This document shows positions 10,350 to 40,674 of a DNA stretch of 64,000 bases, one piece after another. The stretch is from the IMG/VR virus record IMGVR_UViG_3300028416_000004, positions 124,001 through 188,000 of that record. One strand, 5' to 3'. The position numbers and the translations under genes were made by a program. Position 1 is the stretch's first letter; every line of letters begins with the position of its first letter. The notes under the pieces were generated by a model. That model saw nothing but the letters and a program-made list of their open reading frames with translations, was not told the DNA's origin and searched no databases.

Positions 10350-11954
10350 ATGGAAAATAAAAATTTTATAGAAAGTATAATTGAAAATGATAATTTAAAA
10401 GAAATAGTAACTAGATTCCCCCCAGAAAATTCTGGTTACCTTCATTTGGGACATGCTAAATCTATATTTTTAAATTTTGGGTTAGCAGAAAAGTATAAGG
10501 GAAAATGTAATTTAAGAATTGATGATACAAATCCTTCTAATGAATCTGACATTTATACAAAATCTATAATTGAAAACATTAAATGGTTAGGTTTAAATCC
10601 AAACAAGATTACTTATGCTTCAGATTATTTTGAAGAAATTTATAATTTTGCTATAGAATTAATAAAAAAAGGTAAAGCTTATGTATGTTCTTTAGATTCA
10701 AAAGAGATAAAAGAATACATGGGTACAACTGACAAGCCAGGAAAACCTAGTCCAAATAGAAATTTAACTGTAGAAGAAAATTTGCTTTTATTTGATTCTA
10801 TGAAAAAAGGTCAAATTAATGATGGAGCAATGACTTTAAGAGCTAAAATAGATATGTCTTCTCCAAATGTACATATGAGAGACCCGATTATATACAGAAT
10901 TAAAATGGAAAACCATCAAAAAACTGGAGATAAATGGTGTATATATCCTATGTATGATTTTGCTCATTGTTTGTCCGATGCTATTGAATGTATTACTCAT
11001 TCTATTTGTACTTTAGAATTTGAACCGCATAGACCTCTTTATAATTGGATTTTAAATGAGTTAATTGAAAGAGAAATTAAACCAAAACAAATAGAATTTT
11101 CTAGACTTAATTTATCTCATACTGTTATGAGTAAAAGGAAAATTAAAAAACTAGTAGAAGAAAATGTTGTAGATGGTTGGGATGACCCTAGACTTCCTAC
11201 TTTATCAAGTTTAAGAAGAAAAGGTGTACCAGCAAAAGCAATTAAAATCTTTTGTGATAAGATAGGAATTTCTAGAAGAGAGAGTTTAGTCGATTATTCT
11301 TTATTTGATTCTTGTATCAAAGAAGTATTAAATAAAGAAGCTAATAGAAGAATGGTTGTTTTTGACCCAATAAAGGTAACAATAACAAATTGGGATAAAG
11401 AAGATGAAATGTTACCAGCTAAATTAAATCCTGAATCTGAAGAAGAAAAATATAGATATGTAAATTTTGGTAAAAACTTATATATTGAAAGAGAAGATTT
11501 TATGGAAAATGCTCCAAAAAAATTCTTTAGATTGACTCAAGGTAGAGAAGTTAGGTTTAAATATGGTTATTATGTTACTTGTAATGATATTATTAAAGAT
11601 AGTGAAGGTAAAATTGTAGAACTTCTTTGCACTTATGACCCAAACACTAAAGGAGGTTGGTCAGATGATGGAAGAAAAGTGAAAGGTACTATACATTGGG
11701 TTAATGCAGATAAAAATATACCAATTAAAGTTAATTTATATGATAGACTTTTTAATGTTGAAGAGCCTGGTGAAAACTTTTTAGATGAATTAAATGAAAA
11801 ATCTAAAGTTGAAACAGATGCTTTTATGGAAATAGATGGAAATGATGAAAATGAAGGGGTTGGTATTCAATTTGAAAGAAATGGATATTATGTTAGAGAA
11901 AATTTAGATATCTGGAATAGGATTACACCACTTAAAGATTCATTTAAAATTTAA
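10350..11954 (+). CDS. glnS: Glutamine--tRNA ligase
   Basis: TRFPPE..GYLHLGHAKSI (HIGH), YPMYDFAH, THSICTLEF, VMSKRK, GWDDPRLPT, KGTIHWV, QFERNGY. Confidence 0.93.
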   Translation: MENKNFIESIIENDNLKEIVTRFPPENSGYLHLGHAKSIFLNFGLAEKYKGKCNLRIDDTNPSNESDIYTKSIIENIKWLGLNPNKITYASDYFEEIYNFAIELIKKGKAYVCSLDSKEIKEYMGTTDKPGKPSPNRNLTVEENLLLFDSMKKGQINDGAMTLRAKIDMSSPNVHMRDPIIYRIKMENHQKTGDKWCIYPMYDFAHCLSDAIECITHSICTLEFEPHRPLYNWILNELIEREIKPKQIEFSRLNLSHTVMSKRKIKKLVEENVVDGWDDPRLPTLSSLRRKGVPAKAIKIFCDKIGISRRESLVDYSLFDSCIKEVLNKEANRRMVVFDPIKVTITNWDKEDEMLPAKLNPESEEEKYRYVNFGKNLYIEREDFMENAPKKFFRLTQGREVRFKYGYYVTCNDIIKDSEGKIVELLCTYDPNTKGGWSDDGRKVKGTIHWVNADKNIPIKVNLYDRLFNVEEPGENFLDELNEKSKVETDAFMEIDGNDENEGVGIQFERNGYYVRENLDIWNRITPLKDSFKI

Positions 11955-22770: not shown

Positions 22771-24003
22771 TTAATTTACAGCTACTTCACTTTTTTCTTT
22801 GTGTAATTTCAAATAGCTTTCAACTCTACTTTTCGTTACATTTTTCAAGTCATATTTTTCTTTTACGAAATTATGTAGATTTTCTGAAATTCTTTTTACT
22901 TCTTCTGGGTTGTTAATAAGTTTTTTGATATTTTTATACCAATCTTTATGATTTCTATTATCTTTAACTAAGAAACCATTTTCACCATCTTCAATTAATT
23001 CTTTGTAAACCCCAAAATCTTGAGCAATTAAAACTTTTTTTGTCATTCCAGCCTCAATTATTTTAAGTTCAGATTTGACTTCATTAAATTTATTATGAAC
23101 TAAAGGAGCTAAACAAACATCACAAAAACTATAATGTTTACCATATTGAGTTAATGGCAAAGTCCATCTTCTAACATAATTCAATTTAGAATAATCTTCT
23201 GGATATTTTTCATTTTTAAATTCACTTAAAAACTTTCTATAATCTTCATCAACTATTTTGTAATCACTTGTAAAAATTTTTTCAAAACGATTCCAAACAC
23301 TTTCTTCTGGTTTTATTTTTCTTGTCTTTTTTTGACCAGTTTGTTGATTAATTTCTGTAATGTGACCTCTAGTATCAAAACCACATAAAATAATTTGATA
23401 TTTATCTTTTAAAGAATCGTCTGAATTTAATTTTGCCATAGAAGTTTCCATTAACTTCAAATCTTCTAAATGAGATGAACCACCAATCCAAGAAACTCTA
23501 AGTTTATCAAATTTTTCGGCTGTCTCATCTTGTTTCCACATTTTATGTTCTGAATCAATAGCATTAGGCATAACAATCACATTTTTGTTATATTTAGCTA
23601 TTTCTTTAGCAAAAATATCTGTTGTAGTTGTTACATAATCAGATTTTTTGATAGTTTTAATAATTTTTTCCTCTATATTTTCACTTTTTGCAGCATGATA
23701 CATAGGATGTGTAGTTGGAGGAGACCAATAATCATCAATATCCATAATCATAGTTACACCAGCAGATTTTAAGGTATCAAAAATTTCATCAATTCTTTCT
23801 ATTGGTCCAAAGTGTCTATGAAAGTGTATGATATCATATTTTTTTAAAGATTCTAAATCATTAAAATTAGGACTTAAATCAATTTTAACTTCAAAAGAGT
23901 CTTTATATTTTCTTTGAATTTCTTGTGCAGGCCAAATAGACCTAAAGTGCCCAACTCCAGCCAAATCTGAAGGTTGAAATAATATTTTTATTTTATCAGA
24001 CAT
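22771..24003 (-). CDS. Glycosyltransferase (GT-B, GT4-like)
   Basis: GVGHFRSIWP, DIDDYW, WIGGSSHLEDL, DVCLAPL..NKFNEVKSELKIIEAG, DGENGFLV. Confidence 0.85.
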   Translation of the reverse strand: MSDKIKILFQPSDLAGVGHFRSIWPAQEIQRKYKDSFEVKIDLSPNFNDLESLKKYDIIHFHRHFGPIERIDEIFDTLKSAGVTMIMDIDDYWSPPTTHPMYHAAKSENIEEKIIKTIKKSDYVTTTTDIFAKEIAKYNKNVIVMPNAIDSEHKMWKQDETAEKFDKLRVSWIGGSSHLEDLKLMETSMAKLNSDDSLKDKYQIILCGFDTRGHITEINQQTGQKKTRKIKPEESVWNRFEKIFTSDYKIVDEDYRKFLSEFKNEKYPEDYSKLNYVRRWTLPLTQYGKHYSFCDVCLAPLVHNKFNEVKSELKIIEAGMTKKVLIAQDFGVYKELIEDGENGFLVKDNRNHKDWYKNIKKLINNPEEVKRISENLHNFVKEKYDLKNVTKSRVESYLKLHKEKSEVAVN

Positions 24004-28031: not shown

Positions 28032-28901
28032 ATGAAAAATAAAATTAAAGTCATAGTCCCATTTTATAATCCAGGAAAGTTTCTAGATAGGTGTATAAAT
28101 TCTTTGCTAACTCAAGATTATGATAACTATGAAATTCTTTTTATAGATGATTGTTCTACAGATGATTCTTTTTCTAAAATACCTGCTGTAAAATATAAAG
28201 GTGATAGTGAAGGAAATCTTTTGATGGATGATAATGGAGAACCTATAGTTGAAAGTAAACATCACTTATTAGACAAAACTAATTGTAGCAATATTTTAGC
28301 TTGGAGGTCTGGGGAAAGAATTACTGCTCTTCCTAATTTGCATAACGGAATAATGAGGTTTGCTACAGACTCAGAAGATATTGTTGTAATTGTAAATGGA
28401 GATGATTGGCTTGTTAATAAGAGAGTTTTATCTCAAATTAATGATTTTTATAACAAAAATGAAGAGTGTTGGTTAATGTATGGGAATTCAAAAAGTTCTA
28501 ACAATAGTCAAACATATAATCATAAAGAGTATACAAAAGAAGAATTTGAGGATTTAAGAAAAATACCTTTTATAATACCTCACATAAGAACTTTTAAAGC
28601 TGGTCTTTATAGTAAAATTGCAGAACAAGATGAAAATTTTGAATGTATGAAAGATAAATCAGGCAATTGGTATAAAGTTAAATATGATGTTTGTATGTTT
28701 TTACCCATGTTTGAAATGGCTGGTAAGGAGCATGTGTTCTTTAATAAAGAAGAAATGTATATACACAATGTAGATAATCCAATATCCGATAATAGACTAC
28801 AAAGAGAATTGCAGTTAACTACCTATATTGATGTTAATAGAAAGAAAAGTTTCGAAAAATTAGAAAGTTATAAAACAGAAAAATTAGAAGAAAATGATTA
28901 A
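28032..28901 (+). CDS. Glycosyltransferase family 2
   Basis: VIVPFYN, LLTQDYDNYEILFIDDCSTD, VNGDDWL. Confidence 0.88.
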   Translation: MKNKIKVIVPFYNPGKFLDRCINSLLTQDYDNYEILFIDDCSTDDSFSKIPAVKYKGDSEGNLLMDDNGEPIVESKHHLLDKTNCSNILAWRSGERITALPNLHNGIMRFATDSEDIVVIVNGDDWLVNKRVLSQINDFYNKNEECWLMYGNSKSSNNSQTYNHKEYTKEEFEDLRKIPFIIPHIRTFKAGLYSKIAEQDENFECMKDKSGNWYKVKYDVCMFLPMFEMAGKEHVFFNKEEMYIHNVDNPISDNRLQRELQLTTYIDVNRKKSFEKLESYKTEKLEEND

Positions 28902-29676
28902 TGGTATAATAATTTCACAAAACAATCCAGTACAATTAAACCTTTTATTATCATCTATTGATGTAAATTCAAATGATATTTTTGATTTGAGTGTTGTATA
29001 TACTTCTACAAACTATAGTTATAATTTAGGTTATGAAAAGTTAATCAAGAAATATCCTAAAATTAATTGGGTAGAAGGGGTAGAAGATTTTAAAGAAAAA
29101 ATTTTAGACTTATTAGAAAAGTCAAAAAGTGATTATACTTGTTTCTTTACAGATGACAATATTCTTTTTAGTAAAGTTAAGGAAGAAGATTTGGTTACTC
29201 AATTGAGAGATGATAAAGATACATTTTGTTTCTCTATGAGGTTAGGTAAAAATACTATAAAGTGTCATACGATGGATGCTGATAATATTATAAGACCTAA
29301 CTATGAAGATGATAAGTACATTATGTGGGATTGGCAAGTTCATTATTTGGATTTTGGTTATCCTTTATCTTTAAATGGACATATCTTTAGAACAAAAGAA
29401 ATAAAGAAGTTGACAAAAAAAGTTTCTTTTAGTTCTTTGGAAGATTATGAGAGCGGATTACAAATATTTGATAATTTCCCCAGAAAAAATATGTCTTCTT
29501 TCAAAGAGAGTGTTTTAGTTAGTGGTTTAGCAAAAGAAACTGAAAGTATTGAAAAATTAAACACTTCTTTTATATTGGATGACTTAGAAGTTGACTATAA
29601 AAATATGGATTTTAATCAAATTGAAGGATGTTATCAAGAGTTAGATTTTCCTTTAAACAAATTTGAATTAATTTAA
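28894..29676 (+). CDS. GT-A-fold glycosyltransferase-like protein
   Basis: IIISQNNPVQLNLLLSSI, FFTDDNI (DxD-like), FGYPLSLNGHIFR. Confidence 0.6.
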   Translation: MINGIIISQNNPVQLNLLLSSIDVNSNDIFDLSVVYTSTNYSYNLGYEKLIKKYPKINWVEGVEDFKEKILDLLEKSKSDYTCFFTDDNILFSKVKEEDLVTQLRDDKDTFCFSMRLGKNTIKCHTMDADNIIRPNYEDDKYIMWDWQVHYLDFGYPLSLNGHIFRTKEIKKLTKKVSFSSLEDYESGLQIFDNFPRKNMSSFKESVLVSGLAKETESIEKLNTSFILDDLEVDYKNMDFNQIEGCYQELDFPLNKFELI

Positions 29677-29680
29677 TGAT

Positions 29681-29974
29681 ATGAAACCAATAATAGTTCA
29701 CTATATAAATATAGGAAATTTAGATAATGTAGAAGTTTCAGAATATATTAATAATATAAAACAAACTTTTACATATAATGAAGAATATCATAGTATTTTT
29801 ATTCCTATTAGAAACAAAGAAACATATATTGACTGTTTAAATCCTATTGTATTACCAGAAGAAGAAAGAGAAAAATATATTAAAAAAATAGAAAATCTTA
29901 AAAAAAATGTAGAGGAAATGTTGAAAGAATTTCCTTTTTTAAACAAAAATGAACTTTTAATCGAAAAGAAATGA
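29681..29974 (+). CDS. Hypothetical protein
   Basis: 97-aa ORF coupled within the GT operon. Confidence 0.6.
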   Translation: MKPIIVHYINIGNLDNVEVSEYINNIKQTFTYNEEYHSIFIPIRNKETYIDCLNPIVLPEEEREKYIKKIENLKKNVEEMLKEFPFLNKNELLIEKK

Positions 29975-30684
29975 AAAAATTTTCAGAAAGAAATATTCAA
30001 GAAGGTTGGAGTGTAATAGTACCAGCTTATCAGGCACAAAAATATATTGAAAGTTGTTTAGATTCAATTCAAAATCAAACATTATTTCAAAAAAAAGATA
30101 ATTATGAAATTTTATTAGGTATAGATGGTTGTTTAGATACATTAAATGAAGTAAAGAAAATAAAAAATAAATACAAAAACTTAAAAGTTATAAATTTCAA
30201 AGAGAATAAAGGTACTTTTGTAACTTTAAACTCTTTACTTAATAATGTAAATTTTGACAAAACTATAACTGTTGGTGCTGATGATATTCAAATAAATAAT
30301 TTGTTAGAAACTGTAGAGCCTCACTTAAAAGAAAATGACTTAGTTTTGTATCATTGTCAAAATTTTACTGAAGATGGTAAGAATAGTTTAAGTCCAAAAG
30401 AAATGGAAGGTATAGCTGCTGTCAAATGGAGCGTATGGAAAGAAATAGGTGGTTATAAAGCTTGGAAAGTGGGTGCTGATAGTGATTTTGAAATGAGAAC
30501 TAAAAAATTTAAGAGATATATAATCAGAAAACCTCTTTATTTAAGAAGAATTCATTCTGAATCCTTAACTCAAAAAAGAGAAACTGGTTATGGTAGTGAA
30601 TATAGAAAAAGTATCACTAAAAAATTAGCTAAAGATTTTGAATATATTGAACCAGAAATGAATGAAAATTTTGAAATAATATGA
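29971..30684 (+). CDS. Glycosyltransferase family 2
   Basis: SVIVPAY, CLDSIQNQ, GIDG, GADD, IGGY...GADSDF, RRIH..SLT. Confidence 0.88.
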   Translation: MKKFSERNIQEGWSVIVPAYQAQKYIESCLDSIQNQTLFQKKDNYEILLGIDGCLDTLNEVKKIKNKYKNLKVINFKENKGTFVTLNSLLNNVNFDKTITVGADDIQINNLLETVEPHLKENDLVLYHCQNFTEDGKNSLSPKEMEGIAAVKWSVWKEIGGYKAWKVGADSDFEMRTKKFKRYIIRKPLYLRRIHSESLTQKRETGYGSEYRKSITKKLAKDFEYIEPEMNENFEII

Positions 30685-31349
30685 AATTAAAAGTAGTAGG
30701 AATTGCAAGTTTGCCTGAAAGAGAAGAATGCCTTAGAGATACTGTAAATTCTCTATATAATCAAGTAGATAAAATTATAGTAGGATTAAACAATTATAAA
30801 GAAGTGCCTAGTTTCTTAAAAAAAGAAAAAATAGAAAGTTATTTATTGGATAACTCCTTAGGAGATGCTGCTAAATTTTACAAAGTAGATGAATATAAAG
30901 GTCATTTTTATTTTGCGTGTGATGATGATTTGATATATAAAAAAAATTATATTGAGCATTTATTAAAAAACAACAACCCAGTAATTGGTATTCATGCTTC
31001 AATAATAAAATATCCTTGTAAAAATTATTATAAAGACAGAATAGTTTTGCATTCAAATTCTGCATTAGACAAAGATACTGAAGTAGATGTTATAGGTACT
31101 GGTTGTTGTAGAATAGATTTAGAAGTTTTAGATTTAAAATTAAAAGATTTTAAAACACCAAATAAAGCAGATATATATTTATCGGATATTTGCAAAAAAC
31201 AAAATGTAAAAATGATAAGTATTGCAAGAAAAGCTAAAGAGTTTTTTATATACAATCCAAAAATGAAAAATAAATATACAATATATGATGATTTACACTC
31301 TAAAGAAACACCTATACATTGTGAAATAATTAAAAAATGGGAAAAATAA
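30681..31349 (+). CDS. GT-A-fold glycosyltransferase
   Basis: IASLPER...TVNSLYNQVD, GDAAKF, CDDDLIY, GTG. Confidence 0.75.
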   Translation: MKLKVVGIASLPEREECLRDTVNSLYNQVDKIIVGLNNYKEVPSFLKKEKIESYLLDNSLGDAAKFYKVDEYKGHFYFACDDDLIYKKNYIEHLLKNNNPVIGIHASIIKYPCKNYYKDRIVLHSNSALDKDTEVDVIGTGCCRIDLEVLDLKLKDFKTPNKADIYLSDICKKQNVKMISIARKAKEFFIYNPKMKNKYTIYDDLHSKETPIHCEIIKKWEK

Positions 31350-31350
31350 A

Positions 31351-31941
31351 ATGATAAATTTAGAAAAAACAAAAACTTTTGTTATAAACTTAGATAGAAG
31401 AGTAGATAGAATATCTGAAATAAAATTACCTTTAAAATGGGAAAGGTTTTCAGCAACTGATGGCAAAGAAAGTTTCTCAAATAAACCAATGTTTGAAAGA
31501 GGTTGGAGAGGATGTAGAGATTCGCATATAAGATTGTTGGAAAAAGTAAAAGAGTTAGATGAAGATTTTTTTATAATTTTTGAAGATGATGTTGAAGTTG
31601 GTGAAAATTTTATTAATGATTTAGAAAAAATAACTAAAACTTTACCAGAAAATTGGGATTTATTATTTTTAGGTGGTTGGAATGTTGGAGATAAAATTAA
31701 ATATAATGATTTTTTATATTTAGCTAAAAAAGTATATTGTACACACGCTTTTATTATTAGAAAAGAGATTGTTGAAAAAATGTTAAACAAATTTAAAGAA
31801 AGAGAATTTAAAGTTGATGTGTTATTATCTGAATTATTACCTAACATTAATTCTTTTATATGCAATCCAACAATAGCATGGCAAAAGCCAGGATTTTCAG
31901 ATATAGAAAATATTATAACTAATAATAAACATTTAAGATAA
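31351..31941 (+). CDS. Glycosyltransferase family 25
   Basis: FVINLDRRVDR, RFSATDG, GC..SH, IFEDD, WDLLFLG, THAF. Confidence 0.88.
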   Translation: MINLEKTKTFVINLDRRVDRISEIKLPLKWERFSATDGKESFSNKPMFERGWRGCRDSHIRLLEKVKELDEDFFIIFEDDVEVGENFINDLEKITKTLPENWDLLFLGGWNVGDKIKYNDFLYLAKKVYCTHAFIIRKEIVEKMLNKFKEREFKVDVLLSELLPNINSFICNPTIAWQKPGFSDIENIITNNKHLR

Positions 31942-31943
31942 TT

Positions 31944-32543
31944 ATGCCAATATCACATAAAAATAAATTAATTTTTATACATATCCCAAAGAATGCTGGG
32001 ACATCAATAACTGACTCAGAAGGGATGAATTTTTCTTTTAAAGGTCATCATTTGCCTTCTTTTTATAAAAGTAACTTTCCAAATCAATGGGAAAATTATA
32101 TAAAGTTTTGTGTTATTAGAAATCCTTGGGATAGAGTAGTGTCTAATTATGAATACGCTAGAATGCCTGAAAGTCATTGGCATTCAGTTAGTGGTAATTC
32201 TATATATGGAGCTCACCCAGATTATAAAAATTTAATAAAACTTAACTTTAAAGAAACTTTACAAGCTTTTAAAGAAGATAATAACTTTTTAAAACATCAA
32301 GGTTGGGAATCTCAAAATAAGTATATTTATAATAATGAAGGTTTGATGTTATTGGATTACGTTTTTAAATTAGAAGATATTGAGTTAGATTTAAAATTTA
32401 AAAAAATAATTCCTAACTTAAGTGTTAAAAATGTAAGTAAAAAAAGTTATAAAAAATATAAAGATTATTATGATAATGAAACTAAAGATATTGTTTCTGA
32501 GATATATGCTAAAGATATAGAATTATTTAAATTTAAATTTTAA
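31944..32543 (+). CDS. Carbohydrate sulfotransferase (Sulfotransfer_2 family)
   Basis: 5'-PSB motif FIHIPKNAGTSI; 3'-PB motif RNPWDRVVSNY; Y..D.ELF.F C-terminus. Confidence 0.9.
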   Translation: MPISHKNKLIFIHIPKNAGTSITDSEGMNFSFKGHHLPSFYKSNFPNQWENYIKFCVIRNPWDRVVSNYEYARMPESHWHSVSGNSIYGAHPDYKNLIKLNFKETLQAFKEDNNFLKHQGWESQNKYIYNNEGLMLLDYVFKLEDIELDLKFKKIIPNLSVKNVSKKSYKKYKDYYDNETKDIVSEIYAKDIELFKFKF

Positions 32544-33391
32544 TGAAAAAAATATTTTTTATAAACAATTGGAATGAAGACAATCGAAAACTTTTAGAAA
32601 GATATTCCAAACAAACTCCAAATAGTGATGGTGTTTGGAAAGATTTGGTTGGAACAATAAATATGAATGAAGCTGATTATTTTATTGTCTTAGAAGTTTT
32701 TGCAACAAATACTCCAATTGAAAAAACAATTTTTATAAAAAGAGAACCAAATTATATAAGACCTTATAGAAATTTAAAATATAAACATATAGTAGATTAT
32801 AATTTAAAAAATACTGGTGTCACTTATTGGTTGAATAAATCTTATAAACAATTAACAGAATTAAAATATCCAAATAAAAGTAAAAAGATTAGTTGTGTTG
32901 CCTCTTCAAAACATACTCACAGAAATGAATATATTAAAAATTTATTTAAAACAAAAAATAATATTGAATTATATGGAAAGGGTCACAATGAAAAATATTA
33001 TGGCGATAATTATAAGGGCATTTTAAATTATGATGGAAATTGTAAATTTGAAGGTTTAATTGATTATGAATATACTATTGTTATGGAAAATTCACAACAA
33101 AAAAATTATTGGACTGAAAAGTTAGCTGATGCTTATTTGTCTTGGTGTATGCCAATTTATTGGGGGTGTCCAAATATAGAAAATTACTTTCCAAAAGATA
33201 GTTATAGATTAATTGATATTAATAGTAGTAATCCTTTAGATGATATAAATGAAATTATTAAAAAACCTTTAACAAAAACTGAAAAAAATTCACTAAAAGA
33301 AGCAAGGATGTTAATACTCAATGAATATAATATATGGGAAGTAATATATAAAAAAATAAAAGAAATTGAAAATAAAAAAATAATAATTTAA
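32543..33391 (+). CDS. Glycosyltransferase family 10 (fucosyltransferase-like)
   Basis: YEYTIVMENSQQKNYWTEKLADAY...PIYWGCPNI, the GT10 signature. Confidence 0.85.
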   Translation: MKKIFFINNWNEDNRKLLERYSKQTPNSDGVWKDLVGTINMNEADYFIVLEVFATNTPIEKTIFIKREPNYIRPYRNLKYKHIVDYNLKNTGVTYWLNKSYKQLTELKYPNKSKKISCVASSKHTHRNEYIKNLFKTKNNIELYGKGHNEKYYGDNYKGILNYDGNCKFEGLIDYEYTIVMENSQQKNYWTEKLADAYLSWCMPIYWGCPNIENYFPKDSYRLIDINSSNPLDDINEIIKKPLTKTEKNSLKEARMLILNEYNIWEVIYKKIKEIENKKIII

Positions 33392-33405
33392 ATAATAATA
33401 ATAAT

Positions 33406-34029
33406 ATGAAGTTTTATAGTCAATATGGTCAAGATAAATGGTTATATGAAAAATATTTTAAAAATAAAAAAAATGGTGTATTCTTAGAGATAGGTGCAGA
33501 TGATGGAATAGATAAAAGTAATACAAAATTTTTTGAAGATATTGGATGGTATGGGATGTGTATAGAACCCAGCCCTAAACGCTTTAAATTACTTGAGAAT
33601 AATAGAACATGTATATGTGAAAATTACGCACTATCTAATAAGGTTGATGAAGTTGATTTTATGGATATATCAGGGTGGGGCAAAGGTTTAAGTGGAATAG
33701 TTGACTCTTATGATGAAAAACATAAAAAAAGAATTGAGCAAGAAATAAAAAATCCTAAAAATAAAGGAATTGAAATTATAAAAGTTAAAACAGAATTGTT
33801 AAATAATTTATTAAATAAGCATAATATTAATGAGATTGATTTTTGCACTATAGATACTGAAGGTGGTGAAATTGATATAATAAAAAGTATAGATTTCGAC
33901 AAAGTGAAAATAAAATTAATTATTGTTGAAAATAATTATAACAATACTTTAATTCAAAAAATATTATCAAATAATGGATATCAGTTGATAAAAAAAATAA
34001 ATGTTGATGATATATATGAAAAAAAATAA
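33406..34029 (+). CDS. FkbM-family SAM methyltransferase
   Basis: YSQYGQD, FLEIGADDG..SNT, GW.G.CIEP, IDTEGGE. Confidence 0.9.
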   Translation: MKFYSQYGQDKWLYEKYFKNKKNGVFLEIGADDGIDKSNTKFFEDIGWYGMCIEPSPKRFKLLENNRTCICENYALSNKVDEVDFMDISGWGKGLSGIVDSYDEKHKKRIEQEIKNPKNKGIEIIKVKTELLNNLLNKHNINEIDFCTIDTEGGEIDIIKSIDFDKVKIKLIIVENNYNNTLIQKILSNNGYQLIKKINVDDIYEKK

Positions 34030-34038
34030 TATAAAACA

Positions 34039-34614
34039 ATGAATAAAAATATAATTTCTCAAAATTTTTTAATAACTCAAAAAGAAAGAATAGAAATATT
34101 AAAACAAAAACCTCAAGTTATTTGGTTAACTGGATTATCTGGTTCTGGTAAATCAACTATAGCAAATGAGTTAGCATCTAAATTGCATAATGAAGGTAAA
34201 TTAGCTTATATTTTAGATGGTGACAATGTTAGAATGGGTCTTAATAAAGATTTGAGTTTTTCTGATGATGATAGAAAGGAAAATATTAGAAGAATAGCTG
34301 AAGTTGCAAATTTAATGATTGATTTAGGTGCTATAGTTATCACAGCTTTCATTTCGCCATTTGAAAATGAAAGACAAATGGCTAAAGAGATAATAGGCAA
34401 AGATAATTTTGTTGAAATTTATATTAAAACACCATTAGAAACTTGTGAAGAGCGTGACCCAAAAGGGTTGTATAAAAAGGCTAGAGCTGGAGAAATACCT
34501 ATGTTTACAGGTATAGATTCACCTTATGAAGAACCTAAAAACCCTAATATGTTTATTAGAACAGACAAGATGAGTATAGAAGATAGTGTAGAATTTATTT
34601 ATAAAAATTTATGA
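34039..34614 (+). CDS. cysC: Adenylyl-sulfate (APS) kinase
   Basis: WLTGLSGSGKSTIA, LDGDNVR, DRKENIRR, FISPF, RDPKGLYKKARAGEI, FTGIDSPYEEP. Confidence 0.95.
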   Translation: MNKNIISQNFLITQKERIEILKQKPQVIWLTGLSGSGKSTIANELASKLHNEGKLAYILDGDNVRMGLNKDLSFSDDDRKENIRRIAEVANLMIDLGAIVITAFISPFENERQMAKEIIGKDNFVEIYIKTPLETCEERDPKGLYKKARAGEIPMFTGIDSPYEEPKNPNMFIRTDKMSIEDSVEFIYKNL

Positions 34615-35078
34615 GTTGGGAAAAGAAAAATCATGGAGGTGAACCCACCAAAAACAAAGATAAGAAATATGCGATATTCGTTGGTAGATATCAACCATAC
34701 CATTATGGGCATATCAATTTAATTCAACAAAAGTTGGATGAGGGTGTTCCAGTACTTATTATGGTTAGAGATATTGAACCAGATGAAAAGAATCCTTTTA
34801 CAACAGAACAAACTGTAAGTATGATTGAAAAGTATCATAATTCTAAAGGTGATGATGTAAAGGTAATGATTATACCTGATATTGAATCGGTTAATTATGG
34901 TAGAGGTGTAGGATACGAGATTAATGAATACAGACCAACAGAAGAGATTGGGTTTATTTCAGCCACTAAGATTAGGGAATCAATTAAAGAAGGTAATAAC
35001 TCTTGGAGAGAGATGGTTGATGAATCAATCCAGGGAGATGTTGAAAATTATTTATATGAAACTAGAAATAAGTCATAA
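34611..35078 (+). CDS. HxGH nucleotidyltransferase (cytidylyltransferase-like)
   Basis: GRYQPYHYGH, KNPF, ISATKIRE; 4-nt overlap with cysC. Confidence 0.8.
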   Translation: MSWEKKNHGGEPTKNKDKKYAIFVGRYQPYHYGHINLIQQKLDEGVPVLIMVRDIEPDEKNPFTTEQTVSMIEKYHNSKGDDVKVMIIPDIESVNYGRGVGYEINEYRPTEEIGFISATKIRESIKEGNNSWREMVDESIQGDVENYLYETRNKS

Positions 35079-35274
35079 AAGACATATTGCCAAAACTATA
35101 ACTTGGAGATTATTAGGAACAATAGATACTATAATAATTAGTTGGTTTTTGACAAATAATTGGATGATTGGTTTTTCAATTGGAGGTGTTGAAGTTATAA
35201 GTAAAATGATTCTTTATTATATTCATGAGAGATTATGGTATAAATCTAACTTTGGAATTAAAAGAAATAAATAA
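35056..35274 (+). CDS. DUF2061 small membrane protein
   Basis: In-frame ATG at 35056: SHKRHIAKTITWRLLGTIDT...K..LYYIHERLW. Confidence 0.85.
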   Translation: MKLEISHKRHIAKTITWRLLGTIDTIIISWFLTNNWMIGFSIGGVEVISKMILYYIHERLWYKSNFGIKRNK

Positions 35275-35338: not shown

Positions 35339-36952
35339 ATGAATTTTAAAGATATGACAAAAAGCGACATAAAACGCTTCACTAAAATTTATAAAGACAA
35401 AGAGTTAAGTTGGGACAAAAGAATGGAAAAGCTTATGAAACTAACTGGTAAAAGTGAAAGAACAGTTAGAAAGTGGGCTTCAGAAAAGTTGAACTTAAGC
35501 GAAAAAAAAGAAAGTATCCCAGAAGAGTATGTTAAAGCTCAAAAAAGAATTTTCAATAAAAAGAAAAAGAAATTTATTGTAACTTGGGCACAAAATAATA
35601 CTCCAGTAAATGAAAGGTTTTTCAAAAATTTAATTAAATATTCTAAACACATAGACGCAGATATACACGTTATTGCTGGACGTTATAAAAATCCAACATC
35701 TGTATGGTCTGATGAACAAGAAGAAGATGAAAGATGGGATGAAATGGTTCAACCATATCTTGATGCCAATAGACACGATATACATAAGTATGTTTCAATT
35801 ATGTCTGACATTAAGATTCATCCTACTGCAGTTAATCCAATGACTGGTATGCAATCTATTTCTGGTGTTAACTCTTGTATATTTGGCTCTCCTAAATTAC
35901 AAATGGAAATGATACCAGTAATAGAAGGTGAAAAGTCAAAAATGATGGTTACCACTGGAGCTTGTACTGAAAAAAATTATACTGATTCTAAAGCTGGAAA
36001 GAAAGGTGAGTTTCATCACGTAATAGGTTTTGTAGTAGTTGAAATTGAAGATGATGAAACATTTTATATAAGACAAGTTTCCGCTGAAGATAATGGTGAT
36101 TTTTTAGATTTGTACAAAGAGGTTACTTATGATGTTAAGAATTCAAAAACAATCATTAAAGATATTAAAGATATAGAAGCTTGTATTTTAGGTGATTTAC
36201 ACTGGGGACATCATGAACAAGAAGTGTTAGATGTTACTCATAAGATGTTAAATAAAATCAAACCTAAACATGTAGTTTTGCATGATGTTTTTGATGGATA
36301 TTCAATTTCACATCATGATATGAAAGACCCATTTATTCAATACTCAAAAGAGATAAATGATAAGAATAATCTTAAAAAAGAAGTTGATGAACTTTTAGAA
36401 GGTTTAGAAACTTTTGAAAAGTATGAAAATGTAGTTATTGTAAGAAGTAATCACGATGACTTTTTAGATAGATGGGTTAAAAATGAAGATTGGAAACGTC
36501 AACCAACCCCCAAAAATTCCCCTTTATATATGGAATACTCTTCTATTTTGTTGAAACAATATGCAGAACACCCTGAAAATGTAAAAGGTATTATACCTTC
36601 CATTATAAATAATAAATTTCCAAATTTCAAAACTTTAGGAAGAAGAGATTCATATAAAGTTTTAGATTGGGAATTAGGTCAACATGGAGATGTTGGTTCG
36701 AATGGTTCAAGAGGTAGTTTATTACAATATAGAAAATTAAATACAAAAATTGTTGTGGGTCATTACCATAGTCCACAAAGAAAGGATGGTGCTCTTGCAG
36801 TTGGTACTTCAACAAAATTAAGAGTAGGTTATAATAATGGTCCAAGTTCTTGGTTACAATCTCATGTTATAATTCATAAAAACGGAAAAGCACAACATAT
36901 TAATTTTTTTAAGAATAAAAAAGGAGATATAAATTATACAACATTTAAATAA
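35339..36952 (+). CDS. T5 A1-like metallophosphoesterase/nuclease with N-terminal HTH
   Basis: FIVTWAQNNTP, TTGACT.KNY..SKAGKK, GDLH, LHDVFD, SNHD, HGD.G.NGSRG, GHYHS, GYN.GPSSW: the motif series recalled for phage T5 A1 and calcineurin-like phosphoesterases. Confidence 0.8.
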   Translation: MNFKDMTKSDIKRFTKIYKDKELSWDKRMEKLMKLTGKSERTVRKWASEKLNLSEKKESIPEEYVKAQKRIFNKKKKKFIVTWAQNNTPVNERFFKNLIKYSKHIDADIHVIAGRYKNPTSVWSDEQEEDERWDEMVQPYLDANRHDIHKYVSIMSDIKIHPTAVNPMTGMQSISGVNSCIFGSPKLQMEMIPVIEGEKSKMMVTTGACTEKNYTDSKAGKKGEFHHVIGFVVVEIEDDETFYIRQVSAEDNGDFLDLYKEVTYDVKNSKTIIKDIKDIEACILGDLHWGHHEQEVLDVTHKMLNKIKPKHVVLHDVFDGYSISHHDMKDPFIQYSKEINDKNNLKKEVDELLEGLETFEKYENVVIVRSNHDDFLDRWVKNEDWKRQPTPKNSPLYMEYSSILLKQYAEHPENVKGIIPSIINNKFPNFKTLGRRDSYKVLDWELGQHGDVGSNGSRGSLLQYRKLNTKIVVGHYHSPQRKDGALAVGTSTKLRVGYNNGPSSWLQSHVIIHKNGKAQHINFFKNKKGDINYTTFK

Positions 36953-39465: not shown

Positions 39466-40674
39466 ATGGAAACAGTTTCTCAACAAATTTCAGAAGAAGA
39501 AATGTTAAAACAAAGAGAAAAAGCAATTTCAAGTCTTATTTCTAAAATAGAAAAAGAAGAAAATACAGTATATATATACTGTCCTGCTATGAACACTCCT
39601 AGTGGAGGTATCTCTGTTTTATTCGAACACGCAAAAATATTAAAAGATGCTGGAAAAAGTGTGGCAATCATTTATGAACCACAACAAAATAATAAAGCAT
39701 CATTAGAAGCTACTCAAAAAGCTAGATTAAAAGGTGCTAAAGACCCAGTAATTATTTTTGATAAATTTAACCCAACTTGGTTAGGTGATTTAAAAGAAGA
39801 AATTGATGTTAGATGTTTAGCTGAAGGAGTTCTTACTTATACTGATGGAACGACTGAAACAGTAGAATCATTAAAAATGAATCCAGAAGACATCTTAATT
39901 ATACCTGAAGGATTTCCTAATATTATGGAAAACACTTCTCAATTACCTTGTAGAAGAGTTGTTATGGCTCAAAGTTGGTATTATGTTTTATCTGGTATGA
40001 AGGTTGGTCAAAAATGGCAACACTTTGGAATTAAAGATGTAATTTCTGTTTCAGATGGTATTACAGAATATTTAAATACTATTATGCCAGGTTTAAATAT
40101 TAAAAATTATAAACAAGGTATTGATAGAAAATTGTTTAATGTCCCAGAAAAAATTTCTGATAAAGCTCCAATGATTTCCTATATGCCTGGTAGAGGGCCA
40201 GAGTCTCAAATGAAAACTAATACTGTTATTAGAACATTTTATGAATTTTATCCACATTATAGATGGATTCGTTTCGCTCCTCTTCAAGGTTTAACTAAAG
40301 AACAATTTGCACAACAGTTAAAAAATTCTGCTATCGCATTATATACTGATGAAGTTGCTGGATTTGGTACATTACCTTTAGAAGCTATGGCTAGCGGTAC
40401 TCACGTTGTTGGTTGGACTCCTTTTGGAAGTAAAGAATATGTGAATGAAAAAAATGGATTTTGGGCTGTTAACGGAGATGTTTTCCAATTGGCTGAATTG
40501 ATTGGTATGGCTTTGGATAGATATTTTTCTGGAGTTTTAGATTCAGAAGAAATTCAAAAAGAATACGAAAGAACAATTTCAGAGTATACAAGAGAAAAAG
40601 AAGTAGAATCTGTATTAAATATTTATAACACTATTAAAAATGAAAGAATTGAAGAATTTAGAAACCTTAAATAA
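39466..40674 (+). CDS. Glycosyltransferase (GT-B, GT4-like)
   Basis: PSGG...LFEHA..L, DILIIPE, GID..LF, GFGTLPLEAMASG..VVG. Confidence 0.85.
   Translation: METVSQQISEEEMLKQREKAISSLISKIEKEENTVYIYCPAMNTPSGGISVLFEHAKILKDAGKSVAIIYEPQQNNKASLEATQKARLKGAKDPVIIFDKFNPTWLGDLKEEIDVRCLAEGVLTYTDGTTETVESLKMNPEDILIIPEGFPNIMENTSQLPCRRVVMAQSWYYVLSGMKVGQKWQHFGIKDVISVSDGITEYLNTIMPGLNIKNYKQGIDRKLFNVPEKISDKAPMISYMPGRGPESQMKTNTVIRTFYEFYPHYRWIRFAPLQGLTKEQFAQQLKNSAIALYTDEVAGFGTLPLEAMASGTHVVGWTPFGSKEYVNEKNGFWAVNGDVFQLAELIGMALDRYFSGVLDSEEIQKEYERTISEYTREKEVESVLNIYNTIKNERIEEFRNLK

Follow-up and report, generated by a model that had tools for sequence, protein, structure and literature searches.

A marine, T4-like jumbo phage carries a sugar-sulfation gene set in which a 155-residue HxGH nucleotidyltransferase (NTase), encoded in overlap with the APS kinase gene cysC, probably performs the first step of sulfate activation. 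The family to which this NTase belongs is fused or adjacent to APS kinase in about 77 of 80 viral loci and 41 of 65 cellular loci, the latter including both bacteria and archaea. Its membership of the PAPS pathway is near-certain, and we consider a minimal ATP sulfurylase feeding CysC, inferred from sequence and gene context alone, somewhat more likely than not.

A predicted glycan-sulfation cluster in a jumbo phage

The window analyzed is a stretch of 64,000 nucleotides (positions 124,001 to 188,000 of IMG/VR record IMGVR_UViG_3300028416_000004). A sequence-only reading had described a self-contained sulfation module at positions 31944–35274, consisting of a sulfotransferase, then cysC overlapping the NTase, which in turn overlaps a DUF2061 gene, with no cysD, cysN or sat in the window. 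This observation is confirmed, as all the genes are present on the + strand, although some details required correction. The sulfotransferase is not directly followed by cysC, and the block is the 3' end of a co-directional 12-gene cluster spanning 28032–35274.

The cluster opens with a GT2 glycosyltransferase (28032–28901; PF00535, E 1e-15), followed by a gene of unknown function (28894–29676) that overlaps the stop of the upstream gene and has no Pfam or PHROG match, a second GT2 glycosyltransferase (29971–30684; PF00535, E 8e-14), another gene without a family match (30681–31349), and a GT25 glycosyltransferase (31351–31941; PF01755, E 5e-14). The sulfotransferase (31944–32543) matches PF03567 (E 2e-9; 38.4 bits against a cutoff of 22) and phrog_3347 'galactose-3-O-sulfotransferase' (E 2e-14), and contains both PAPS-binding motifs, a 5'-PSB-like IPKNAGTS at residues 14–21 and a 3'-PB-like RNPWDRVVS at residues 59–67. 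Between it and cysC lie two genes missed by the sequence-only reading, a GT10-like glycosyltransferase with a fucosyltransferase C-terminal domain (32543–33391; PF00852, E 8e-13) and an FkbM-family methyltransferase (33406–34029; PF05050, E 3e-20; TIGR01444 above its cutoff).

The cysC gene (34039–34614) encodes a canonical APS kinase, scoring 231 bits with PF01583, 270 bits with NF003013 (cutoff 163) and 261.5 bits with TIGR00455 (cutoff 138.7); the P-loop, DGDNVR, ENIRR, ISP and KGLYKKAR motifs are intact in the alignment. Its stop overlaps the start of the NTase gene (34611–35078) as ATGA. The NTase matches PF01467 at 34 bits (cutoff 21) and carries the motifs GRYQPYHYGH and ISATKIRE. The DUF2061 gene, encoding a small predicted membrane protein, matches PF09834 at 76 bits. 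Its longest ORF is 34924–35274, but the domain starts only at residue 55; by homology with the 73-residue homologues at two related loci (L004 and L005), which overlap their NTase by 23 nt, the likely start is the ATG at 35056, giving a protein of 72 residues (35056–35274).

The genes are real rather than chance ORFs; the NTase has more than 5000 database homologues, the best 120 listed sharing 79–100% identity. A phmmer search with E. coli CysD and CysN found no hit in the window, and neither the QxRNPxHxxH nor the GRDHAG active-site motif of Sat-type enzymes was found by a pattern search over all ORFs of the window and of the related loci. No NAD-salvage gene such as NAMPT or Nudix is present in the window either. 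PADLOC gave no defense-system match for the NTase, DUF2061 or the sulfotransferase, and a promoter and terminator scan of the cluster was uninformative in this AT-rich DNA.

The NTase family is coupled to APS kinase

To investigate whether the NTase is tied to cysC beyond this phage, as the sequence-only reading had proposed to test, fusions and gene neighborhoods were surveyed. Of 150 representative clusters of the family at 50% identity, 47 are fusions with APS kinase, in both domain orders (35 CysC-NTase and 12 NTase-CysC), and 2 are NTase-DUF2061 fusions; DUF2061-CysC fusions also occur. One fusion is an annotated single CDS in an isolated phage, Xylella phage Sano gp35. Of the three viral loci in which cysC is neither adjacent nor fused, two sit at contig edges. 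The 41 linked cellular loci, found in a genome scan with a narrow family alignment, span Acidobacteriota, Bacteroidota, Marinimicrobia, Omnitrophota, Planctomycetota, Alpha- and Gammaproteobacteria, several CPR phyla and Methanosarcinales. N-terminal extensions of 180–240 residues on some homologues (P0129, P0158, P0160, P0198, P0209) look on inspection like Cys-rich HNH-type homing-endonuclease sequences rather than functional partners, although Pfam searches of P0129 and P0158 returned no such domain.

Sulfotransferases, CysQ-like phosphatases and DUF2061 recur beside the pair. Sulfotransferases lie within 10 kb in 42 of 80 viral and 20 of 43 cellular loci, against 1 of 15 loci of the NMN adenylyltransferase (NMNAT)-like outgroup. 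Compact sulfotransferase-cysC-NTase-DUF2061 cassettes are recurrent in viruses (for example, at locus L091). A Marinimicrobia capsule locus has two sulfotransferases followed by cysC and the NTase, Omnitrophota and Planctomycetota have an NTase-CysC fusion beside Sulfotransfer_1, and Methanosarcinales have an NTase-CysC fusion followed by a CysQ-type Inositol_P phosphatase inside an AglB/GT locus. The remark in the sequence-only reading that DUF2061 commonly sits in cysC/cysD/cysN loci has an outside example in the Mesorhizobium nodH-nodP-nodQ-DUF2061 locus (bioRxiv 10.1101/2022.04.26.489235); the phage cassette has the NTase where NodP/CysDN would be. An ESM-Atlas search for DUF2061 added nothing.

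The coupling is asymmetric and has exceptions. Whereas the NTase almost always has cysC in viruses, only 36 of 80 viral cysC loci have the NTase, and the 5 loci with CysDN are all among the 44 without it, as expected for an optional upstream supplier. Close relatives of this cysC (84–86% identity, at loci L183 and L184) carry DUF2061 but no NTase, so cysC can work without it. The unlinked cellular loci are essentially one lineage, nested inside the viral clade: a Dadabacteria/Thermodesulfobacteriota lineage (22 loci) keeps an NTase 70–74% identical to that of the phage among housekeeping genes, with no cysC or sulfotransferase within 10 kb. Exact look-ups of the Dadabacteria NTase and of the ORF called at locus L007 returned no record. 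Finally, one Acidobacteriota sulfation locus carries canonical cysD-cysN divergently adjacent to an NTase-CysC fusion, where a sulfurylase role would be redundant.

The NTase is a trimmed derivative of archaeal-type NMNAT

An AlphaFold2 model of the NTase (pLDDT 90.7) has a predicted Rossmann-like fold, the nearest folds being archaeal NMNAT (TM 0.70) and PPAT (TM about 0.66). The best sequence match is likewise archaeal NMNAT (E 1e-15 with the family profile). No Sat appears among the best 60 of 77 PDB profile matches at E≤10 or the top 50 Foldseek matches, and no Pfam or NCBIfam Sat hit was obtained. Thus, no kinship with Sat beyond the shared superfamily was found by sequence or by fold. 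The sequence-only reading had also pointed to a C-terminal ISGT..R motif of Sat-type enzymes, here ISATKIRE, but the ISxT..R motif is not Sat-specific and is equally conserved in the NMNAT-like outgroup.

These matches raise the possibility that the protein is an NMN or NaMN adenylyltransferase for phage NAD salvage (NadM/NARP2-like) that merely hitch-hikes next to cysC. Some databases name relatives 'NMN adenylyltransferase', an isochorismatase-like gene and a NAPRTase-family gene lie within 8 kb in one phage lineage, and a NADAR gene precedes the fusion in phage Sano. This reading appears very unlikely, however. The scores are far below the cutoffs of the curated archaeal-type NMNAT families TIGR01527 / NF002243 (44.6 bits against 181.2, and 51.3 against 127), and the family forms a clade separated from NMNAT-like proteins with an SH-aLRT of 99. 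The family profile aligns to residues 5–76 and 109–155 of MJ0541, with 8 residues in place of about 33, so that about 25 residues are missing from the central segment between the 'DIE' and 'GYEV' motifs (MJ0541 residues 77–108), which forms the NMN site. The conserved Gly-Ser after strand 2 is replaced by Arg-Asp. True phage NMNAT-Nudix proteins match only weakly, at 29–38% identity over half the length, and linkage in the family is to cysC and sulfotransferases, not to NAMPT or Nudix.

A TagD/PPAT-like enzyme, making either a CDP- or ADP-activated alcohol for the glycan cluster or dephospho-CoA that the kinase then phosphorylates, is even less likely. The Pfam family is named 'cytidylyltransferase-like', the core of about 130 residues equals TagD in size, the gene sits in a glycan cluster and PPAT is the second-best fold match. 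However, the profile match to glycerol-3-phosphate cytidylyltransferase is only E 0.018, against 1e-15 for NMNAT, the score with the PPAT family (CoaD, TIGR01510) is 26.2 bits against a cutoff of 103.3, linkage is to cysC whether or not glycosyltransferases are nearby, and the partner kinase here is an above-cutoff APS kinase equivalog, not a dephospho-CoA kinase.

The full catalytic set of an active HIGH-type NTase is near-invariant in the family (G25, R26, H31, G33, H34, S117, T119 and R122). Two further near-invariant arginines are family-specific: R53 is 96% conserved where the outgroup has Gly in 100%, and R98 is 96% conserved where the outgroup mostly has Ser. Both lie at the ends of the acceptor-side strands. 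Even the short kinase partners keep the P-loop, DGDxxR, R79 and N82.

A candidate minimal ATP sulfurylase

In our favored model, the window holds a phage-borne, largely self-sufficient glycan-sulfation module. The NTase would use its HxGH and ISxT..R core to transfer AMP from ATP onto sulfate, giving APS and PPi, which is sulfate adenylyltransferase chemistry on a trimmed NMNAT-type scaffold without a GTPase partner. The translationally coupled CysC would immediately phosphorylate APS to PAPS and thereby pull the unfavorable first step, and the PF03567 sulfotransferase would transfer the sulfate to a glycan built and methylated by the neighboring glycosyltransferases and the FkbM methyltransferase. 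DUF2061 would be a small membrane component of the module, possibly an anchor or involved in sulfate supply. The gene identities, the canonical nature of cysC, the tight evolutionary coupling of NTase, CysC, DUF2061 and sulfotransferases, and the derivation of the NTase clade from NMNAT-like enzymes with a shortened acceptor region and two new invariant arginines are established by the analysis. In contrast, the sulfate adenylylation activity of the NTase and the nature of the sulfated target, a glycan on the host surface or the virion, are inferred. The interpretation in the sequence-only reading, that the small NTase fills the missing step as a new minimal ATP sulfurylase so that cysC serves glycan sulfation, is therefore partly supported: the functional tie to cysC held, whereas the arguments from Sat resemblance did not.

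An alternative is that the NTase belongs to the PAPS pathway without being a sulfurylase, either as a regulatory or stabilizing partner of APS kinase or by catalyzing another nucleotidyl transfer on APS, PAPS or PAP, with APS supplied by the host's own Sat or CysDN. The Acidobacteriota locus with cysDN and the 44 viral cysC loci without the NTase are consistent with this view, and hosts of the cultured carriers (Xanthomonas, Stenotrophomonas) are able to make APS. We consider this possible but unlikely. The near-invariant catalytic set argues for catalysis rather than scaffolding, the two new arginines suit an anionic acceptor, and no known step of PAPS metabolism other than sulfate adenylylation needs this chemistry. 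CPR and DPANN-type genomes, which generally lack assimilation pathways, also carry the pair.

Sulfate activation is currently assigned to two enzyme types only, Sat and CysDN, and metabolic reconstructions and viral 'auxiliary metabolic gene' surveys score genomes on that basis. It is about as likely as not that the cysC-linked NTase is a third, previously unrecognized class, GTP-independent, about 130 residues in size and derived from NMNAT, which together with CysC, a sulfotransferase and DUF2061 forms a four-gene portable cassette spread by phages and used in at least ten bacterial and archaeal phyla. Many genomes now scored as unable to activate sulfate (CPR, Omnitrophota, Marinimicrobia, some Methanosarcinales) would then be able to make PAPS. 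This would change sulfur-cycle annotation for abundant uncultured marine and groundwater lineages and their phages, in which members are at present named 'cytidyltransferase-like', 'NMNAT' or just 'adenylyl-sulfate kinase'. It would also explain how phages sulfate glycans independently of host sulfur metabolism, offer a minimal two-domain PAPS synthase for biotechnology and give the first functional context for DUF2061. Literature searches on DUF2061, phage cysC with sulfotransferases, novel ATP sulfurylases, cytidylyltransferase-APS kinase fusions and Dadabacteria sulfur metabolism found no description of this NTase, and a paper on ANME sulfate assimilation does not mention the fusion. One automatic ESM-Atlas cluster name, 'putative sulfate adenylyltransferase/adenylylsulfate kinase (Met3)', exists for archaeal fusions, but was most likely carried over from the similarity of the CysC domain to bifunctional Sat-CysC models, not derived from evidence. 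Even if it proves not to be a sulfurylase, the NTase is an unrecognized and nearly obligate partner of a large subset of APS kinases.

Comparison with known systems

Bifunctional PAPS synthases (Sat-CysC fusions such as human PAPSS1/2 and bacterial PRK05537-type enzymes) likewise couple sulfate activation and APS phosphorylation physically, by fusion or operon and in either domain order, and use an HxGH nucleotidyltransferase domain, HxGH being the catalytic motif of the ATP sulfurylase domain of PAPS synthase (PMC11697783). The NTase core is about 130 residues against about 400 for Sat, lacks a PUA-like domain, and has GRYQPYHYGH and YGRGVGY in place of the QxRNPxHxxH and GRDHAG motifs. The CysDN/NodPQ complex with the NodH sulfotransferase is similarly a dedicated PAPS-supply module placed beside a sulfotransferase, for glycan or Nod-factor sulfation, and is accompanied by DUF2061 in Mesorhizobium. 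CysD, however, has a PAPS-reductase-fold ATP pyrophosphatase and needs the CysN GTPase, neither of which is present in the window, and the candidate enzyme would be GTP-independent. Archaeal-type NMNATs (MJ0541, the M. thermautotrophicus enzyme and the NadM N-terminal domain) share the GRxQPxHxGH, NP(F/Y)T and (I)SxTxIR motifs and the C-terminal Trp with the NTase, which differs from them in the central deletion, the Arg-Asp replacement, a new invariant G-R-x-V-G-Y loop and its genomic partner. The PHROG family phrog_10255, annotated only as 'kinase', belongs to the same family: the window's CysC matches the N-terminal half of that profile and the NTase the C-terminal half. Sano gp35 is a single-chain fusion of a short kinase with the NTase, whereas the window has the two domains as separate, overlapping genes with a full-length canonical cysC.

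The glycan cluster and its phage

The 64-kb window has a G+C content of 26% and encodes a gp23-type major capsid protein, a tail sheath, gp25, a prohead protease, PhoH, DHFR, thioredoxin and a glutaminyl-tRNA synthetase. The last of these is full-length (10350–11954, + strand; PF00749, E 8e-103), and another ORF of the window contains an alanyl-tRNA-synthetase-type domain (PF01411, E 7e-21). The identical nucleotidyltransferase (NTase) protein is recorded on a contig of 240,856 bp. The window belongs to a T4-like jumbo phage, whose nearest cultured relatives by capsid are Flavobacterium myophages at 34% identity. Directly after the sulfation module lies a gene (35339–36952, + strand) for a 537-aa protein that resembles the A1-like/DNA-transfer protein of Cellulophaga phage phiST and the Flavobacterium 'elemo' phages, which, together with the capsid relatives, hints at a marine Bacteroidota host. 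Two loci from single-cell genomes labelled 'uncultured Bacteroidetes' (L008 and L010, about 30% G+C) carry cysC plus an NTase 74–75% identical to that of the window, and L008 groups with a viral contig in the tree. These may be phage DNA captured in infected cells, which would be a further clue to the host.

From 28032 to 35274, twelve + strand genes abut or overlap. They encode, in order, a GT2 glycosyltransferase, an unknown protein, a 97-aa ORF, a second GT2, a second unknown protein, a GT25, a PF03567 sulfotransferase (31944–32543), a GT10-like transferase (32543–33391), an FkbM methyltransferase (33406–34029), CysC (34039–34614), the 155-aa NTase (34611–35078) and DUF2061. The observation made in the sequence-only reading is thus confirmed, except that it placed cysC after the sulfotransferase and skipped the GT10-like and FkbM genes. 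The cysC gene is canonical, scoring 270 bits with NF003013 against a cutoff of 163 and retaining all motifs, and it overlaps the NTase gene as ATGA. The DUF2061 gene most likely starts at the ATG at 35056, by analogy with 73-aa homologues that overlap their NTase by 23 nt. The sulfotransferase carries both PAPS-binding motifs, so it needs PAPS. No CysD, CysN or Sat-type motif and no NAD-salvage gene were found within the window. The glycan machinery of the phage is larger than the flagged region, as GT1 glycosyltransferases are encoded outside the main cluster at 22771–24003 (− strand) and 39466–40674 (+ strand). One ORF of the window is a very strong match to DUF2827 (E 4e-94).

Sequence and predicted structure of the NTase

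The NTase passes only the generic PF01467 threshold. The best curated families are archaeal NMNATs, but the scores are far below their cutoffs (51 against 127 and 45 against 181), and PPAT scores 26 against 103. To compare folds, an AlphaFold model was built from a 40-sequence alignment and was confident, with a pLDDT of 90.7. The best PDB neighbours of the model are M. thermautotrophicus NMNAT at a TM score of 0.70 and PPATs at about 0.66. No ATP sulfurylase appears among the top 50 fold matches, nor among the best 60 of the 77 profile matches to PDB sequences, so the protein is not a member of the Sat family. The argument in the sequence-only reading that the ISGT..R motif points to Sat-type sulfurylases is not diagnostic, because that motif is equally conserved in NMNAT-like proteins.

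The NTase is not an ordinary NMNAT either. The family profile aligns to MJ0541 residues 5–76 and 109–155, and about 25 residues of the central segment are missing. A comparison of 170 family members with 12 NMNAT-like outgroup proteins showed that the catalytic core is shared (G25, R26, H31, G33, H34, N61, P62, D90, S117, T119, R122 and W132), but the family has near-invariant residues of its own. R53 is 96% conserved where the outgroup has Gly in 100%, and R98 is 96% conserved where the outgroup has Ser in 83%; D54, G97, V100, G101 and Y102 are also family-specific. In the model, R53 ends strand 2 and G97-R98 lie in the loop after the strand ending at P89, which in NMNAT and PPAT structures is the acceptor side of the active site. 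A tree separates the family (93 rows) from the longer NMNAT-like proteins with an SH-aLRT of 99. An NMNAT function is considered very unlikely, and a TagD- or PPAT-like function less likely still.

Fusion and linkage of the NTase to APS kinase

The decisive comparative evidence came from the wider family. A search of 1.8 billion cluster representatives returned 1327 relatives. Of the best 150 clusters, 35 are CysC-NTase fusions, 12 are NTase-CysC fusions and two are NTase-DUF2061 fusions. In IMG/VR, about 77 of 80 loci have cysC adjacent to or fused with the NTase, two of the three exceptions being at contig ends, and DUF2061 is present in roughly 35 of the 80. In one genome per species, the family is fused or adjacent to cysC in 41 of 65 cellular loci, which come from Acidobacteriota, Bacteroidota, Marinimicrobia, Omnitrophota, Planctomycetota, Alpha- and Gammaproteobacteria, several CPR phyla and Methanosarcinales. 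Complete or near-complete genomes that carry the family include OZ244851.1, OX638332.1, the SAG AQSI01, and CPR and Omnitrophota MAGs. DUF2061-CysC fusions also occur (loci L056, L057, L096 and L132), and all three proteins are therefore linked pairwise by fusion. Other architectures exist in the family. One protein (P0144) is an NTase fused to PF20475 (DUF6717), and several (P0129, P0158, P0160, P0198 and P0209) carry a Cys-rich N-terminal extension that by eye looks like an HNH-type homing endonuclease, suggesting mobile-element invasion next to the gene, although Pfam returned no such domain on the two that were scanned.

A large viral subfamily of 'mini' APS-kinase-like proteins of 146–150 aa (for example at L162:9526–9972 and L140:1780–2226, and P0121 residues 1–150) is always paired with the NTase. 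These partners, found in many phages, lack the KGLYKKAR...FTGI lid segment but keep the P-loop, DGDxxR, R79 and N82. Those Arg and Asn residues bind the phosphosulfate in APS kinases. Cultured phages also carry the kinase-NTase fusion, namely Xylella phages Sano and Salvo, Stenotrophomonas DLP6 (as AAY80_227), Xanthomonas AhaSv and Seregon, and Clavibacter phage 33, so the hypothesis of a sulfurylase is directly testable. In the siphophage Sano (L179:4555–6324, gp33–gp35), the fusion (gp35) is preceded by a NADAR-domain protein (gp34), and before that lies a 195-aa protein with a sub-threshold Sulfotransfer_4 hit and PSB/PB-like motifs (LPRSRS and HRPAREVAHS).

The neighbourhoods name the pathway. 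In Marinimicrobia, a capsule locus contains Sulfotransfer_1 and, further along, Sulfotransfer_5, APS kinase and the NTase. In Omnitrophota, APS kinase, a sulfotransferase and a sulfatase accompany an NTase-CysC fusion, and in Planctomycetota such a fusion is directly followed by Sulfotransfer_1, near flagellin and a glycosyltransferase. In Methanosarcinales, an NTase-CysC fusion is followed by an Inositol_P (CysQ-type) phosphatase in an AglB/GT locus. An iterative search found sulfotransferase homologues within 10 kb in 42 of 80 viral loci and in 20 of 43 cellular family loci (excluding the Dadabacteria lineage described below), against 1 of 15 NMNAT-like outgroup loci. Many viral loci carry the compact cassette sulfotransferase-cysC-NTase-DUF2061 (for example L091).

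The dependence between the two genes is asymmetric. The NTase nearly always has cysC, but only 36 of 80 viral cysC loci have the NTase, and the five loci with CysD/CysN-CysC are all among those without it. This is the pattern expected of an optional upstream supplier of APS whose product is useless to a sulfotransferase without CysC.

Exceptions to the linkage

Three observations count against a sulfurylase role. First, in an Acidobacteriota MAG (L178:5117–16010), canonical cysN-cysD lie divergently next to an NTase-CysC fusion, in a sulfated-polysaccharide locus with Wzm/Wzt and two large sulfotransferase-glycosyltransferase fusion proteins. A sulfurylase would be redundant there, and this is the only case seen in which both candidate sulfurylase types co-occur. 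Second, 22 Dadabacteria/Thermodesulfobacteriota-type genomes of 47–57% G+C (loci L011–L029 and L031–L033, for example L019:9944–10408) carry a stand-alone NTase 70–74% identical to that of the 26% G+C phage. It sits in a conserved housekeeping neighbourhood of UbiD, MsrA, Aat, a GATase, methyltransferases and HemB, with no cysC or sulfotransferase within 10 kb, and its function there is unexplained. In the tree this clade nests inside the viral clade that holds the window (96*, 99*). It therefore counts as one transfer or one loss of linkage, and looks like a phage-to-bacterium transfer that became fixed. Third, two viral contigs whose cysC is 84–86% identical to that of the window (L183:2699–3488 and L184:5114–5903) have DUF2061 overlapping cysC directly and no NTase, which has been lost, or was never gained, in these close relatives. 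An accessory, non-sulfurylase role of the NTase in the same pathway thus remains possible, though it is considered unlikely.

A proposed route to PAPS

In the proposed mechanism, the NTase would adenylylate sulfate to give APS and PPi, and CysC, translationally coupled here and fused elsewhere, would convert APS to PAPS, pulling the unfavourable first step. The sulfotransferase would then decorate a glycan assembled and methylated by the neighbouring enzymes, with DUF2061 as a small predicted membrane component of the module. HxGH is the catalytic motif of the sulfurylase domain of PAPS synthases (PMC11697783), so the chemistry has a precedent in the superfamily. The gene identities, the coupling of the NTase to cysC, DUF2061 and sulfotransferases, and the separation of the family from NMNAT-like proteins are results of the analysis, whereas sulfate adenylylation by the NTase and sulfation of a glycan are inferred from sequence and genomic context alone. 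That the NTase belongs to the PAPS-sulfation pathway is very likely; that it is the sulfate adenylyltransferase is only somewhat more likely than not. The interpretation in the sequence-only reading, that the small NTase fills the missing step as a new minimal ATP sulfurylase, is accordingly supported in part.

Relation to known systems

Members of the family bear the public names 'cytidyltransferase-like protein', 'NMN adenylyltransferase', 'kinase' (phrog_10255, Sano gp35) or, for fusions, 'adenylyl-sulfate kinase', and one automatic Atlas label reads 'putative sulfate adenylyltransferase/adenylylsulfate kinase (Met3)'. Full-text literature searches found no paper describing the family. The step and the type of module are known; what would be new is a non-orthologous enzyme for that step. 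Outside this family, DUF2061 lies in the Mesorhizobium nod locus with nodH, nodP and nodQ (bioRxiv 10.1101/2022.04.26.489235), and in the phage cassette the NTase occupies the slot that NodP/CysDN has there.
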